Positions 48,261-56,183 of a stretch of DNA of 64,000 nucleotides are shown piece after piece. The translations under genes were made by a program, and so were the position numbers. Origin of the DNA: Pelomyxa schiedti (lineage: Eukaryota > Protista > Evosea); the NCBI GenBank assembly GCA_020536535.1, contig JAHLWZ010000852.1, positions 1 to 64,000 on the forward strand, written 5' to 3'. Below the pieces are notes generated by a model, which was not told where the DNA came from, searched no databases, and saw nothing but the letters and a program-made list of their open reading frames with translations. Within the stretch, counting starts at the first letter, position 1. The number at the start of each line of letters is the position of its first letter.

Positions 48261-48866
48261 ATGCAACCGCTAGCAAAATGCAGTGTCACCGAATTCTTTC
48301 CCGACTCAGACTTCGAGATAAAACTTACGGAACACACAGTAAAATGCCACACAAAAAAATCTTCACTAATAGCATAGGGATATGGTTTGTTTACCCGGAA
48401 AGACTTGCCTGCAGGGAAACCGATCATTCCTTTCTGTGGCCAAGTGACTGTCAATTCCCCACACAACATGTACACAGCAAGAATGGTTATTGATACTCCC
48501 ACTGCACCACTATGCTTTTTCATTGACGCTGAACGGACTGGAGGTGTGGCCCGCTTTATCAACCATGCGTGTGAAGGCAAAAACAATGTTTCCACATGTG
48601 TTCTGTGGGTCACTGAGTGGAACGAACCAGCCTTGATAGTGTGTTCCCGCTGTGAAATTCCCGCAAACACTGAGATTCTGTTGGACTACAGTGTCACCAT
48701 CATCAGTGATAACCCCAAAGATCAGAGCATTCCTTGCCAGTGTGGTTCTGTAAGCTGCAAAAAGACCTTATGCCCCACAACTAGTGCATCTCTACCACAA
48801 GCCCAAACTCAAGTTTCCATTCCTCCCCCAACTCACAAACACCATCACCACAAAAGAAGGCTCTGA
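48261..48866 (+). CDS. Compact SET + post-SET domain lysine methyltransferase
   Basis: FEIKLTEHT/GYGLFTRKDLPAGKPIIPFCGQV, IDAERTGGVARFINHAC, EILLDY, post-SET CQCGSVSC; one 39-nt intron at 48339-48377. Confidence 0.85.
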
Positions 48867-48922: not shown

Positions 48923-51900
48923 TTAGGTCTGGAAGTAGGTGTGTGATTTTTGTGCCGTGGCAATGAGGTGATTGAGGAGGGTATAGCCAGAAATAGCATG
49001 CTGGTCCCCATTGGTTAAAACGGAGCCTCCGGATGTGTGTCTTAACAAGTTTTCACTTGCAACTACTATGCACTTCTATAGGGAATGATAAGGAAACACA
49101 GTCACTGTGACTAGAGATACCTGTTTGGCTCGGGTCACAGCTACATTGAGCCGTTGCTTGTTGTAAATGAAATTCAGTTCCCCAGTACATACACTGGGGA
49201 AAACATAGTCCACAATTACAACATCCCTTTCTTGGCCCTGGACCTTCTCTACAGTGTTAACGGAATTCTGTATATCGATTCCAGATTGAAATAACGGTGC
49301 TGTGAGGTTTTGTCCAAAGCAAGGACATAATTTTTGAAGAACGGCAAGCCTCTGTATGTGCTTTGGTGTCACAACAAATAGAGTGTTTCTCCAGAAGGTG
49401 GAGTCCGGTACCTGAAAAGTTATTAGTATAAGGGCACACAGGTTGTCATACTGTTGTATTGTTACGTAAAAATGAACATAAGTCTGCGATCAATTTCACG
49501 CCAACAGTTTCTTGCCTTTAAATTGTGAGAGCATCCTCCAAGAAAAGGAAGCAGTTACTTAACCACAATGAAAACAAAGGCGAAATCAGGGTTCAGGGCA
49601 TTCTGAATAATCGTTCCTTGCTTTTGCAGTAAAGCTGGGTCCAGAATGCGCAATCTCTGAGAGGCAATCTGTAGGCGTTGGTATCTTAGTGGCCATGGAA
49701 AGGAAAAACCTCTTGCGTTGCTGGGTGAAAGGGGTTTGTGGGGTTTCGATACAGCATGGACGCCATAATGTCACACAATTGGGTACACATTCTAGTTGTT
49801 TCTGAGAAAATAAATTGACATGATTATAAACACCTCCAAGACTCTGTAAGCATACTGGAGAAGCTACAACTGCAATTCATTAAAGAGGAGAAGGGGAAAA
49901 AAGGTGTTACCTCTGGTCAGAGGCTTGGAAATAACCAAAAAGTGACGAATCCAGTCTCCCCCATGGGGATCCTTTCCTCTCTTCAGGTATGAGCCGTGAA
50001 AGAGTTGGGGATAGAACAAAACTCACTAATGAGTATTCAGTAAAGTTGCCGAAAGAAAAGCAATTGTGACACCTCGTTTAACAGGTCCCAGTTGGTTCTC
50101 ATCCCCAAAGAGCAATAGTCGTCCACTTGGTTTGAGATAACACATTGGTATACTGAGTTCAGGAAGAGTGCTCTGTGTGGCTTCATCCCAAAGAATGACA
50201 TCAGCCTCCAGAATGTGAGTAACATGATGGACAGGCGTTACGTTACTACCATCGGTGGTTTTGTCATTTCCTTGAAGTGTCTGATTTGCCACACAGTCCC
50301 ACCAATTACAGCAAACTTGGCGTTGGAAAGGAAGTTAAACACAGTGCACATCTCCCCGTGCTTGCATGTGGGGTAATTCAAACACCTTAGGTGCTTGCCA
50401 TCTTTTTCCAATCGACCAATACAAAACGGTTCGTTACTAGATCCATCTCTCAGGATTGGTAATGAGAAGAAGGTCATACTCTTGTTGTCGGTTCAGCTGT
50501 GATAGCGATTGGAGCAGAGTTGAGATACTGGTATTGGTGAAGCAAACAGCAAGAGCTAAAAATCTATCCTTGCCGGATCTTATTGCCTGGCGCATCATTA
50601 ACAGAGCAGTTGCCGCGATAACACGTGATTTGCCAGATCCAGGGGGCCCCCACACAAGATGAAGGTGTTGGTCAAAACACTTTTTCACCACCTTGGTTGG
50701 TTAGACACAGCAGCGAATATCATGCCTAGTACCTTTGACTGTTCAACTGTAAGAAGAGACGCAGGAAGGGGTTCTGGAGGAAATTGCAGTAGTGTGTCAG
50801 GTTTAAAACTCTGAAAGAGTTCCATTGTCATGAGGAGTGTAAAAATGGGAAAATAATGAACACACAGAGAGAGCCCAATCTATCGGATTGTGTATAACAT
50901 TTAGAAAAAGAGAGGGCTTGCCATAAAGCTGAAGATGTGTATAAAGCATTGGAGAAGTTACATCTTGGTTGGCAGTGCACAAGAGATAATGAGCACCTTT
51001 CACGGAATTAAACACATAGGCTGTGGAGAAATACTACCTGGTTTTACAGTCGTAGATGCCATTATGGACAGAGCTAACACAAGATTCCCACCTTCTGATA
51101 CTGTCCAGGTTAAGTACTTCTTAGGGGAGGGATGACCTACAGCGTGTGGATTCCACTCGCACTAAAATATTACTGAATGCCCTGTTCTTGGAAAAAAGAG
51201 CTCCAAACTCATTCGTAGTGAACAGTTTCTTCTGGGCTGCGCTCCGTGCGCCGTTCGCTTCCTTATTACCACAAGAGCAGTCCCCGCAACAGTGACAGTA
51301 GGAGTGGGTACTTTTCGAGCAAGTGCACTCAACTAGAAGATTAAATACTTCTCTCTCAATACGTGACATGTATTGAGTGAAGTGTGGCCCATCAGCGGAA
51401 GTCATTACTGTAGTGAAGATAGCTTTTGATATCTGGTAGGTGTTGGAGGGAAACAGAGTGAAGATGAAAGTTGACAGGTATTTCTGGCCTAGGTTGGTCT
51501 TCAGGTAACGCAGCACTGCAAGTAACTACAACACAGGACTTCTTTCTGCAAAAAAAATTAGACAAGTTGTGTACAAATGTTGGGTACTCTTCTTGGTATT
51601 CGAGGGAATGAGATCTCACAAATCTCTGTTTTTCAGCAAAGTCATAGCATTCTTGCTGGAGGAGATACAAAAAGCGTGGAATATAACCAGAGCCAGCTTT
51701 ATGTATCAGAGGCCACTTAAACAATGGTGGACGAGGGAGCAATCTGGGAGGTTGGTTATGCAACGGAATCGAGAGAATTATACCTTGAATGTACTTCAGA
51801 GCCCTCTAATGTGTGTCGCAGTCCATTTAGAACCTCAAACGTGGACATGATTTTTTTCTTCATCCACTGTTCTCGAACTTCTTCTGAGAACTCTTTTGAT

Positions 51901-54900
51901 GATGAGACGGAAATTGGTGTGCAGAAGAAGGCACACTTGTGGAGGTTTGTGAGAGGTAAAATTCGGCTACCATCTCTGTGTCAAGTGACTCGAGAGGAGA
52001 GATGTCAGACATTAATTTATAAATTTCTTCTCTTAGCGCAGCTCCTCTATTCTGCTGAGTAAGAGTGATACAATACGATAGCTTTACTAACTGTGTAAGA
52101 GCAGCACAGTAGTCTCCTAATGTAGCATCATAAAAAAGAGGAAGTGCCAGATGGCGATCGACTTCGGATTTCAGGACTACAACCCGTAAGGGTGTACAAG
52201 AAGATAAGTCAGGCTGTTGGATAACGTTACCAAGGTTCTAAAGTAATTGTGAATAACCTGAAGTGGAGCATGTAAAAGAAGCCCGTCTGGAAAAAGAGTT
52301 GCCAAAAGCCTGGAAGCTTGTTTCGAAAAATCCTAGATGTGAAGTATCAGCATATGAGAACAAGAGAGAAATTCGACTGTACATTGAAATCTTGTTCAAC
52401 GTCAGGCGAAACCACATCTGAGTCCAGAGTTGCCACAACACTCGTGACATTGGGAGTTGCGTTCTCGTTACCAGAAGGCGGTGCAGTGGTTACTACCGCT
52501 TCTTGAGATGAGGGCAAGGCAAGAATAGGGCTGCTATCCACATAACTTGGCAACTGGTGCGCAATATGCATACTTTCAGTACTTGGTTCTGGTGCCGCCT
52601 TCATGGTTTTCGTGGAATCTTTTTTTTTTCTTGCAGTCGTTTTCCTTGTACTCGTGGGGGTAGATTCGCCAATTGGTTGAGTATTAGGTGACTCTTCTGA
52701 TGATTGCACATCTCTTTGTTTGAGTTGTGCTGCAAGCTTAGATTGGGAACGTGTCACCGCTCCAGCTGAGCGTATTTTTGCAGGATCGATATCATCCTTT
52801 TCCTTCAGAGTATATTCAAAAGTTTACAAAGGAAAACAGGGTGGAATTACATGAGAGTTGTTTGTGGCTTCCAGATTAACAGCTCCAAAATCTTCAATCA
52901 GCTTGGGAATACCGTCATCTTGTTCTGCTTTAGATCGTCTTCTATTTGAGGGGCTCTGCTGCGGGAGTGGGAGACCAGAAGGGGAGGAGAAAAGGGGAGA
53001 AGGGGGAGGAAGCACTGCAGGAGATGGTGGAACAATTGAGGGGGTTGGAGGTGCAACTGGTGAGGATGGTGAAAGTATTGACGATGGGGACTTCATATAC
53101 CGAGAGGTTTTAGATGACGTCCTTTTCTTGTCTACCATGCAGTTTAAAATTTTTAACAAAAAGTGCTGCAGTGATCTCTACCTGGTGCTTTCTTCATTGG
53201 TGTAATGAAAGCCGTGGAACTAGCAGCACTGGCACTTATGTTCTGTGAGAACACACCAATACAATTTACAAAGAAGTACATTGGCTCAGTAGATTCAAAA
53301 GACGGGGGTATTTTCCATGCATTACTCAGAAGGATTGCTTTAAACGCATTAAGTTCAATCTGGAACATCAAAGTAAATTCTGAGTCAAAAGGTCATGGTG
53401 AAAATTACCTGGTCCCAGATGTAAATTTGTGTGTGCACTCTCTGCTGCCAAGGAAGAGGTTCATTATAGGCAGATACCTTGTCTAGAACACAGTACACGG
53501 CAGTGATAAGGTTACATTGTAATTCGCTGTTTACCTCCGGCGGAACAACGTTTGTATCTTGAAGTTCAGATAAGTAATTGAACATCTGGCCTGTAATGTG
53601 AAAAGTTACCTGCTAGTACGTTTGTAAGTATTACAGAGGTTGCAGAAACTTCATGGAACCACTTCAGATGTGATGATGCCGGGGTGTCAAGGTGAAAGAG
53701 TGGGGAGAGAATTTGCTGAAAGATAAGGGTTGGTGATAATTCCTTCGGCCCCCTAAATGTCGTTGGGGTAAAGTAATGTCAAAATTATCTAACCTTTGCC
53801 TGTTAAATATACCCATGCCCCAAGATAACAGGGAAAGTCTATGATAGTCAAAAGTAAGTCCTATCACAACTGCCAGGTTCTCACAGGCAGGGAGTGTGGA
53901 GGATCCAAGATGCGCAGGGCCCAGTACAACGACCCGACGTTCATTAAACGACTTCAGACGAGATGAAACGCTCTCAATTGGCATACAATCTGAGATGCAC
54001 CTCTTACCAAAGTTGGGTGACGACCTCAGGTAATGTTATTAAGGTAGATTTTGGTACTAGAAAACATCAATTCCGCCAAAGAGTTTTGGCATTCCGGGAC
54101 AGTAAGCAGTAGGCAATTCTCTTCAAGAATGTCTCGAACTTCAGCATCAATACCGTTTATCAGGAAGACTGACTGGATTTCTGGTCAATGGGAAGAAAAC
54201 AATCAAATGGGAGACCTTTTCTTCCTGTGCACGTCTTCAAGACTAAGTTAAAAAGGTTGAGAAAAACTTGGAAGGTACCTTACACAATACTCCGAGTAAA
54301 CACAGCTCTTGCATGCTGAAAGAAGACAGGACTCTACTTGGTCAAATGAACTGGTGGCTACCTGAGCCAGCCTAGCTACATGTGGCAGGAGAGTCTGAAT
54401 AATATACATCCGTGCAGATGTAAGATGAACAAGTGAAAAGGTATTCTCTCCAGAAAGCCATATCCCCCCTGAGGTAGTATTTACCAAGAGTGGGATATCC
54501 TTTTCCTAGGGATGATGAATTAATAGTTTCACCCATATGAGGCACACCTGGCAAGTTGCTTCAAGGATCATTGTATACAAGCTGAGTTGTAAATTATATG
54601 CGGCTTTTGTGTGTGGAGAGGCTTTAGCGTCTTTTGGGGGTGAGATTTGTAGAGTAGCAACACACTAATACCAATGATAAACGCTTCCCTTCCATTGCTC
54701 GACCCTGTACTATGTCAAATCAAAGGATATATCTAATAAGCAGGGATACATACTACGGATTTCTATGAGGTCAGGATAACATCTGGAGAATGACAAAACT
54801 GAAGACTGAGGGAAATTTAAAAAGGATGCTCTAAAAGTTGAATTCACAAGTAAGCAAGCCTGATAAATGAACACCCTAAAAAAGTGATAAGAAATCAAAT

Positions 54901-56183
54901 AGAGGAAGGCAAGGGTTTACCTCTTTCCCTCTACAGGCTCTACAGTACGTAGAAGGTTGATAGTCTCAGAGGGCGTGAATTTGTTGTTTGGAGGTGCTGG
55001 CTGATGCACAATGTCACCGCGCTGACAAATCATACTTATGAGCTTGCTCTCCCACTCAAATCCACTGTTGATGTAATAGCGTGACATAGGACTCACTAGA
55101 AGGAAAGGGGGAGCATTTTTCACCTTAGTTTTACTCAATTCTTACAATTGTAAAGGTTATGTTACATGTTCCAGGATATCCGCGATGTATTACTACTTCT
55201 GATGTGCAAGAGCTGCTTAATGCATTTGGAGCACTGAGGCTGTGGGCATATGGGTCCATGGTCAGCTGTATTCTTTTGTGGTGAGGATCGTCCATAGTTA
55301 CCCAATATACCTGAAGTGCTTGTTACAGAGAAGAATGTAACTGGGTAGGCTCTTAGCAGCACCAGTTTCCAGTATGCTGGCATTAAGTGGATCCAGAGGA
55401 AGCACTTTGGCTCCAGAAGAAGTTTGGAAAAACCATGTTGCTCTGTGAAGGTGGAACTGATTTGAAGAGTGAACCTAAAGTATAGGAGAGAAGAACTCAC
55501 ATAGAGATGAGTGTCCGAAAAACTGAATGTAATGAACATTTTCCCCACGTCGACTGTACAAACAGCCTTTCCTTCTGGGGTGTCAAATTCACTGACTGCT
55601 ACTCCTGCTCTGTCAAACTGATATAAGACTTCCAAAGCTGACGCTTGCACAGAGGGAAACGAAACCCCACAGCAACAAATATCAGAGCACTTCTCTGGAT
55701 CCAGGCAAGGGTTTTTTTGCTTCCACCACTTATAGCAAAAAGCACCAACAGATGAAATTGTGAACTTATGATGCCCGGTTTGAGATAAAGTTTCTTGACT
55801 TGGATTTGGAGGTACTCCCTAGGAGAAGCAAGATAGAATAAGATATCAATAGTCACCATTGCAATGCATACCTCTTCGAACGAAAAATACCATCTAGCAG
55901 ATTGCACACCACTTGGGTCACCACTTCTTGATGTTGCACTCAATACCAAAAACCTACACATTTCTCATTACTTTTGTTTTTGAAAAAAAAAAAAAAAAAA
56001 AAAGAAAGATTTCACGAGATAGGGAAACCTGTCGCAGTTTGACAAAGTGAAATAGGACATCAACATGGATGGGCTGACCCGAAACTGCACCGACGACTTG
56101 GACGATGACGTCAATGCCGAAACACGAAGCACCCTCTCAGATTCCGTCATTGTTGTCGTTTCGCAGCACCTGCCCTCCTGCAT
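48923..56183 (-). CDS. RecB/Cas4-like (PD-(D/E)xK, Fe-S staple) nuclease fused to SF1 DNA2/NAM7/UPF1-like helicase
   Basis: N-terminal VSPSMLMSYFTLSNCDRF; YPDLIEI...FII/DAKAS..K..YNLQLSLY; CKSCVYSEYC (Cx2Cx5C). Helicase: VWGPPGSGKS, CFTNTSI, LWDEATQ, LFGDENQLGP, VNTVEKVQGQERD, RLNVAVTRAK. Many introns; TAA at 48923-48925. Confidence 0.85.

Follow-up and report, generated by a model that had tools for sequence, protein, structure and literature searches.

What kind of enzyme is encoded by the long, intron-rich gene at 48923..56183 on the minus strand of a contig from the anaerobic amoeba Pelomyxa schiedti? The window analysed here is a stretch of 64,000 nucleotides (nt), positions 1 to 64,000 of contig JAHLWZ010000852.1 in assembly GCA_020536535.1. 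An initial annotation had read the gene as an iron-staple nuclease of the RecB/Cas4 type fused to a superfamily 1 (SF1) helicase, distinct from Dna2, with the layout of the bacterial TM0106 proteins, and possibly a laterally acquired defence enzyme. Our analysis gives a somewhat different answer. The protein is probably a eukaryotic member of the Bad family, of which only bacterial and archaeal members had been described, and would be a DNA2-like, but non-DNA2, iron-staple nuclease with an SF1B helicase.

The locus holds a nuclear gene of P. schiedti that is expressed and spliced. Its coding region has the extent and strand given before, from the ATG at 56183 to a stop codon that ends at 48923. 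Exact exon-by-exon mapping of the deposited protein onto the window yielded 39 exons and 38 GT-AG introns of 38–75 nt. The predicted product of 1839 amino acids (aa) is identical to KAH3745966.1 (hereafter P0001; 1839 aa), which is encoded on a 74-kb contig and was deposited as 'AAA family ATPase [Pelomyxa schiedti]'. This entry was retrieved by searching the AAA_12 exon against a library of 1.84 billion proteins, and later searches used it as query. Before that, the gene had been approached through a listing of open reading frames (ORFs), a three-frame reading of the minus strand from 48.9 to 56.2 kb and exon-by-exon searches. The three-frame reading showed a eukaryotic window with very short introns and motifs distributed over many small exons. 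Transcription and splicing are documented by RNA contigs from three single-cell RNA-seq runs that belong to the same study ('protist metagenome'). Between 50437 and 53793, these contigs omit 11 stretches of 40–55 nt, each bounded by GT and AG on the minus strand, and all 11 are introns in the deposited gene model.

The predicted fold of the N-terminal part is that of a Cas4/Dna2-type nuclease. Its PD-(D/E)xK core spans residues 271–483 (54234..55093; all features of the gene lie on the minus strand) and contains G281/W284/E285, Y332-Q333, P362-D363, D380-x-K382, Q394...Y398 and C472-x2-C475-x5-C481. In the window, these residues can be read as CYPDL with D363 (54770-54772), an intron-split IIDAKA with D380 and K382 (54623-54672), QLSLY for Q394-Y398 (54575-54589) and CKSCVYSEYC for C472/C475/C481 (54284-54313). 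The candidate first cysteine ligand of the staple was placed at C50. It is part of a helix motif at residues 33–62 (SPS..YF..C50.RF.L..SATS, with SPS at 37–39, YF at 44–45 and C50-D-R-F) that runs across intron 1 (motif 55923..56087, intron 56028-55954). This placement comes from profile A3, which was built from 18 prokaryotic members only and matches residues 33–62 with its positions 2–30, and from structural alignments with Cas4. We compared these residues in family alignments of 12, 28 and 62 members. G281, E285, D363, D380, K382, Y398, W423, C472, C475 and C481 are invariant in 28–62 aligned members, and the columns of C50, E285, D363, D380, K382, Q394, Y398 and the three downstream cysteines are invariant or nearly so. 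Because the catalytic and cysteine columns are invariant across the family alignments, the nuclease and helicase motifs are not chance matches.

Domain libraries detect this nuclease weakly. A scan of the whole protein gave Cas_Cas4 at 22.6 bits (cut-off 22.7) and PDDEXK_1 at E 0.0013, and the exon-wise scan gave a weak Cas_Cas4 match (E 0.013) on the Cx2Cx5C exon. NCBIfam and PDB searches of the nuclease exons tested returned no match, and the N-terminal family profile found no true match among PDB sequences. An AlphaFold2 (AF2) model of residues 1–745 has predicted local distance difference test (pLDDT) values of 85–98 in the nuclease core; for most of residues 48–225, the values are below 50. 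Foldseek matched it to Dna2 (2e-5) and Cas4 (3e-4), and the Foldseek and VIA matches together take in Dna2, Cas4, MGME1, Exo5 and AddB. The VIA-align Z scores were 11.9 for Cas4-Cas1 (7mi4), 10.6 for 8d3l, 9.0 for SSO0001, 8.4 for Exo5, 8.2 for AddB and 8.0 for Dna2. These alignments begin at residues 32–34, i.e. with the helix bearing C50. A PD-(D/E)xK fold is present in the predicted structure, as the initial annotation had anticipated.

The C-terminal part is an SF1B helicase of the Upf1/Dna2-like type, with a core at residues 1365–1810 (49013..50777) in which motifs I, II, III, IV, V and VI are intact. They read GPPGSGKS, DEATQ, GDENQLGP, ESWRM, TVEKVQGQERD and RLNVAVTRAK, and all motif residues are invariant in the family alignments. 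AAA_11 and AAA_12 score above their Pfam cut-offs in P0001; exon by exon, AAA_11 falls on 50440-50700 and 50029-50334 and AAA_12 on 49079-49489 (3e-12). A model of residues 985–1839 (predicted template modelling score 0.82) found Dna2 as the top Foldseek match (5EAN, E 2e-23), followed by Sen1, Upf1, SETX, IGHMBP2 and ZNFX1. In VIA, model residues ~140–855, starting at protein residue ~1124, align with the cores of Upf1, IGHMBP2 and nsp13 at Z 25–28, and the alignment takes in the stalk and the 1B barrel. The protein has all the parts of an Upf1-like SF1B motor, namely a RecA1/RecA2 core, a stalk, a 1B barrel and AAA_11 plus AAA_12. The motifs listed in the initial annotation, from the S.S.L..YF....C.RF type around C50 through PD, DxK, Q...Y and Cx2Cx5C to the full helicase, were all recovered, and its fusion of an iron-staple nuclease with a complete motor is borne out by the conserved columns and the predicted folds.

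Between the two enzymatic parts lies what had been noted as a long middle region. It consists of a family-conserved central domain and, together with the nuclease part, houses two Pelomyxa-specific inserts (residues 63–270 and about 712–977). The central domain begins after the Fe-S motif with a helical linker (residues 490–560; 53919..54172), which is seen in the alignment with the prokaryotic family and as helices in the model. It is followed by an alpha/beta domain (residues 570–715; 53312..53891) and, after the second insert, by residues 978–1364 (50778..52332), where profile and VIA matches indicate a helical region and then Upf1-like stalk helices and the 1B beta-barrel. By structure, the alpha/beta domain appears RNase_H_2-like. 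In the ESM Atlas, residues 34–739 match whole TM0106-family proteins with PF13482 (383–391 residues aligned, template modelling (TM) scores by row 0.59–0.67), and residues 31–745 match clusters named 'bifunctional RecB family nuclease/helicase' (TM 0.53). A feature search returned the same families. The PDB matches of residues 571–701 are weak (best VIA Z 7.1; ExoI 5.6). By sequence, PF13482 was not detected in P0001 even at E = 1, and domain 570–715 has no Pfam match. The module seems to be a divergent domain resembling the RNase_H_2 domain of TM0106 proteins; this resemblance does not imply catalysis.

To which family do these parts belong? BLASTP aligned P0001 residues ~270–712 with the first ~450 residues of many bacterial proteins of 1170–1290 aa (E down to 7e-28), for example MBI5014607.1, a 'predicted RecB family nuclease' from a deltaproteobacterial metagenome-assembled genome. 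Their Pfam layout, Cas4/PDDEXK_1, then ~500 residues without a Pfam match, then AAA_11/AAA_12, is the same as in P0001. Profile A3 is collinear with the protein. Beyond the staple motif, its positions 45–346 correspond to residues 271–582 (E 1.2e-41), positions 386–437 to residues 660–711 and positions 443–633 to residues 978–1178, so that the prokaryote-only profile matches the central domain at residues 490–582, 660–711 and 978–1178. The central-domain motifs LF.WPP.F and the YVFD-like IYIWD align with the family, as does the helicase in the full-length alignment. A scan of prokaryotes (one genome per species, with an N-terminal plus central family alignment of six sequences as query) found 138 relatives, 80 of which were kept. 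These include Ca. Competibacter denitrificans, Methanoculleus marisnigri, Methanohalobium and Methanosphaerula, matched over residues 4–770.

Bad is a bacterial and archaeal DNA2-like helicase-nuclease studied in Geobacillus stearothermophilus (Wilkinson et al. 2020, PMC7430649). It has an Fe-S cluster and is a single-stranded DNA (ssDNA)-dependent ATPase, an ssDNA endonuclease and a 5'-3' translocase and helicase, in which D150 belongs to nuclease motif III and K815 to Walker A. Its conserved central domain, of 'completely unknown' structure in 2020, is absent from DNA2. Its physiological role is unknown; it was described as a rare enzyme and studied as a model for DNA2 (all PMC7430649). We took the family of P0001 to be Bad because the relatives in our scan share genera and species with Supplementary Figure 1 of that paper, in which the family is defined by proteins of the four genera above, those of Ca. 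Competibacter denitrificans and Methanoculleus marisnigri being from the same species. In the prokaryotic relative P0080, motif III is D150/K152, at the same D150 position as in Bad. The TM0106-like layout proposed earlier stands as far as the nuclease, the putative RNase_H_2-like domain and AAA_11/AAA_12 are concerned. The family itself is a different one: TIGR03491, the TM0106 model, reaches 27.7 bits against a cut-off of 97.45 (E 1.2e-6) and only in the nuclease part, and the sequence relationships point to Bad as the precise family, not TM0106 proper. A word-index search with P0001 residues 1–560 found only P0001 itself, and in one with the full-length alignment most matches were SF1B helicases that are unrelated; neither says anything about absence. 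Literature searches on TM0106 nucleases and on Cas4-like together with Upf1-like parts returned nothing.

Several points weigh against this assignment or parts of it. Upf1-like motors can act on RNA, too. Membership in the Bad family rests on the species overlap and the matching architecture, without a direct comparison to Geobacillus Bad, and the identity to prokaryotic members is 20–26%, with long branches. Bad is the only characterised family member, and the eukaryotic members are known from their sequences alone. No RNA contig covers 53882-56250, where the 5' exons rest on the deposited model and on homology. Finally, the 208-aa, low-confidence insert that separates the staple helix from the nuclease core could disturb the staple, and a second cysteine, C229, lies within a weaker look-alike of the N-terminal motif. 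The prokaryote-only profile selects residues 33–62 as the staple motif and not 210–240. An internal duplication of this motif (residues 25–125 versus 195–300) was rejected; BLASTP gave no alignment.

How might such an enzyme work? Taking the biochemically studied Geobacillus Bad and the structurally studied Dna2 as a basis, a 4Fe-4S cluster on C50 and C472/C475/C481 would staple the N-terminal helix onto the PD-(D/E)xK endonuclease core with E285, D363, D380 and K382. On its way to the Upf1-like motor, single-stranded DNA bearing a free 5' end would be threaded past the nuclease; the motor would translocate 5' to 3' with ATP, so that the DNA is unwound and the strand cut ahead of the enzyme. 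The family central domain, including the putative divergent RNase_H_2-like module, would sit between nuclease and motor. We infer by analogy that Fe-S binding, substrate and polarity are as in Bad and Dna2. The biological role could be either the processing of DNA ends or flaps or the restriction of foreign DNA.

The second of these roles is close to the initial annotation's suggestion of an enzyme directed against foreign DNA or RNA. In the amoeba, such a defence enzyme would restrict the nucleic acids of viruses, endosymbionts or prey. Three prokaryotic loci indeed lie among defence-type genes (LmuB_C, MZB helicase, SNF2, AAA_15/21, Eco57I-type methylase, NERD-UvrD, NOV_C, WYL), and the helicase resembles the DpdJ and MkoA motors. 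A Type III-like methylase adjoins bad in Geobacilli, and the authors of the Bad study propose a restriction role (PMC7430649). However, ten other genes directly next to prokaryotic relatives belong mostly to housekeeping or repair (thioredoxin, aconitase, lipase, XPB-like helicase, HhH-GPD glycosylase), with an HNH protein in addition. No partner gene is conserved across taxa, the only synteny being that among Methanoculleus species, and PADLOC matches are confined to the generic helicase (DpdJ, MkoA) or Cas4 parts. All of the support comes from prokaryotes and none from a eukaryote. The gene neighbourhoods did not bear the suggestion out, and we consider a defence function rather doubtful.

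It is also conceivable that the substrate is RNA, as for Upf1, Sen1 and MOV10, instead of DNA. Alignments of the motor, stalk and 1B barrel included, to the RNA helicases Upf1, IGHMBP2, SETX and nsp13 reach Z 25–28. Against this, iron-staple nucleases of the Cas4/Dna2 type are DNA enzymes. Bad, moreover, acts on DNA in its ATPase, endonuclease and helicase activities (PMC7430649), and an RNA substrate appears quite improbable.

One alternative is that P0001 is a rapidly evolving orthologue of DNA2, which acts in replication and repair. The order of nuclease and SF1B helicase is the same, and Dna2 structures are the top Foldseek matches for both of our models. However, PF08696 (Dna2) has no match in P0001, whereas the DNA2 references P0165-P0168 have it, and BLASTP with duck DNA2 aligns the helicase alone, at 23% identity. 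A tree of 81 helicase rows puts P0001 in a starred clade (99) of 45 rows, 32 of which have a Bad-type N-terminal domain, away from DNA2, which stands on the opposite side with other SF1B helicases. Forcing P0001 and DNA2 into one clade costs 88 log-likelihood units (approximately unbiased (AU) test, p-AU 0.00085). P0001 also has the central domain typical of Bad and absent from DNA2 (PMC7430649). No OB-fold or RPA-binding region was seen in the model of residues 1–745, in which residues 48–225 have pLDDT below 50. On these comparisons of sequence and phylogeny, DNA2 orthology is largely refuted and we reject it as very unlikely, in agreement with the non-Dna2 reading of the initial annotation.

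A prokaryotic contaminant or endosymbiont gene, which would fit the bacterial and archaeal nearest characterised relatives (methanogens included) and the bacterial and archaeal symbionts described for P. schiedti (PMC10579272), is virtually excluded because the 38 spliceosomal introns of the GT-AG type, of which 11 are spliced out of the RNA, and the SET-domain and Rab-like neighbours, both with introns and within the same 64-kb window, mark an intron-rich gene among eukaryotic genes, while identity to any prokaryote is only about 25%.

The nearest relatives of P0001 were found in a Logan contig (P0018), in the Rhizamoeba saxonica transcriptome of EukProt (P0005), in a metagenome contig with fibrillarin, SH3, BORCS6 and C2H2 genes (P0006), in a contig with OGFr_N, RING and EF-Tu-type genes (P0139), in an NCBI assembly contig with TEX47 and ceramidase genes (P0067), in transcript-like contigs (P0015) and as a partial protein of Acaulospora colombiana (P0118), which joins the eukaryote-type rows in the helicase tree. 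Two scans of viral contigs yielded no relatives. In two full-length trees, ten eukaryote-type rows, several of which are eukaryotic by inference alone or of unknown origin, form one group (FastTree 94; IQ-TREE with a mixture model, 96). With a second subfamily of ~1400–1500 aa as outgroup, this group is the sister of the clade formed by the sampled Bad proteins of bacteria and archaea, and is not nested in it. The trees have long branches, and the prokaryotic sampling is skewed towards one query. Judged from these relatives, the gene is not a recent import into Pelomyxa only. Given the long branches, the inferred or unknown origin of several rows and the biased sampling, the lateral acquisition suggested in the initial annotation is possible, but the sister-group position does not bear it out.

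These results suggest that the Bad family extends into eukaryotes, with an intron-rich, expressed amoeba homologue and relatives in other eukaryotes. They would add a second DNA2-like nuclease-helicase lineage to be weighed in annotating eukaryotic genes of replication, repair or immunity. The Bad central domain seems to hold a TM0106 RNase_H_2-like module followed by an Upf1-type stalk and 1B barrel. For the deposited entry, 'Bad-like iron-staple nuclease / SF1B helicase' can replace 'AAA family ATPase'. One may speculate further that Bad-type nuclease-helicases are an old, patchily retained eukaryotic lineage beside DNA2 (in Amoebozoa, glomeromycete fungi and uncultured protists), acting in a restriction-like manner against foreign DNA in amoebae with endosymbionts or viruses. 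We regard this as unlikely; if true, it would provide a eukaryotic counterpart of a prokaryotic defence motor-nuclease as a stand-alone enzyme.

Some further features of the gene should be mentioned. The insert in the nuclease domain (residues 63–270; 55094..55922) has no counterpart in the prokaryotic profile, is also absent from the nearest relative P0018 and has pLDDT mostly below 50. Within it, residues 128–205 (window about 55300-55700) were modelled as a helix plus a five-stranded sheet with VIA matches to frataxin/CyaY (Z 6.1–6.5, pLDDT below 50), a curious resemblance beside a putative Fe-S site but far too weak to count as a finding. The second insert includes a disordered Ser/Pro/Thr/Lys-rich segment (residues 744–977; 52383..53182; S 17%, P 13%) with several basic clusters. 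It falls between profile positions 437 and 443, is specific to P0001, and its exons are covered by spliced RNA contigs. A Cys-rich stretch (C.C......C.CC..C.C) in a low-confidence part of the model, residues 1225–1244 (51274-51333), could be a small P0001-specific metal-binding insert.

Two introns, 52047-52091 (45 nt) and 51546-51587 (42 nt), are in frame and free of stop codons, with no bridging RNA contig, and could serve as coding sequence in some transcripts. Intron 1 holds a run of ~21 T on the minus strand (55970-56014), and read-through would give poly-Phe. A splice model obtained by dynamic programming was rejected for over-splicing, e.g. through Cx2Cx5C, and was misled by this T run. 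Downstream, a convergent ORF on the plus strand (48387-48866) with a SET-domain-like C-terminus (..FINHACEGKNN.., C.CGS..C) ends ~60 nt short of the nuclease-helicase stop codon, so that the 3' ends of the two almost touch.

Variants of the architecture exist among the relatives. Bad homologues of Pirellulaceae and other Planctomycetota (L039, L041, L043, L044, L050, L059, L070, L074, L083, L086) are ~2030–2130 aa long, with a C-terminal extension of roughly 800 aa past the helicase. P0164 (1973 aa, ENA metagenome) matches the Bad-type nuclease profile at residues 924–1179 and has a DEAD/Helicase_C (superfamily 2, SF2) part before and an SF1B helicase after it, a two-motor variant. In one bacterial lineage (L003:11837-14881 and L004), a DEAD/Helicase_C protein of 1014 aa with WHD_HRQ1 and MZB (DUF1998) is encoded 12 nt downstream of the Bad gene, and the two genes may form a two-helicase operon.

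Compared with known systems, the P. schiedti protein shares the PD-(D/E)xK fold with Cas4, AddB, Exo5 and MGME1. With Cas4, AddB and Exo5, it has in common the arrangement of one N-terminal cysteine plus C-x2-C-x5-C, and VIA gives Z 10.6–11.9 for Cas4. Unlike Cas4, its nuclease has no CRISPR context, is fused to a motor and stays just below the Pfam Cas_Cas4 threshold. Residues 34–739 superpose on whole TM0106-type proteins, which combine the nuclease with PF13482 (RNase_H_2); stand-alone TM0106 proteins, however, have neither the helicase nor the remainder of the central domain, and P0001 scores far under the family cut-off with PF13482 undetected. Eukaryotic DNA2, represented by mouse Dna2 (5EAN/5EAW/5EAX), also places a nuclease with an Fe-S-stapled PD-(D/E)xK fold ahead of an SF1B helicase, and for either half Foldseek ranks its structures first. 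In contrast to DNA2, the P. schiedti protein lacks PF08696, has an extra central domain, and its sequence similarity is confined to the helicase motifs. Bad differs in other respects. The P. schiedti protein has a eukaryotic host and a gene with 38 introns, and it falls within a separate group of eukaryote-type sequences. It is 1839 aa long against ~1250 aa, owing to the extra 208-aa nuclease insert and a ~270-aa central insert (712–977), and at 20–26% identity it is a distant relative. With Bad, however, it has in common an iron-staple RecB-family nuclease with four cysteines, a central domain that is conserved and an SF1B helicase. The three parts follow each other in identical order, are collinear over the full length and retain the catalytic and cysteine residues.

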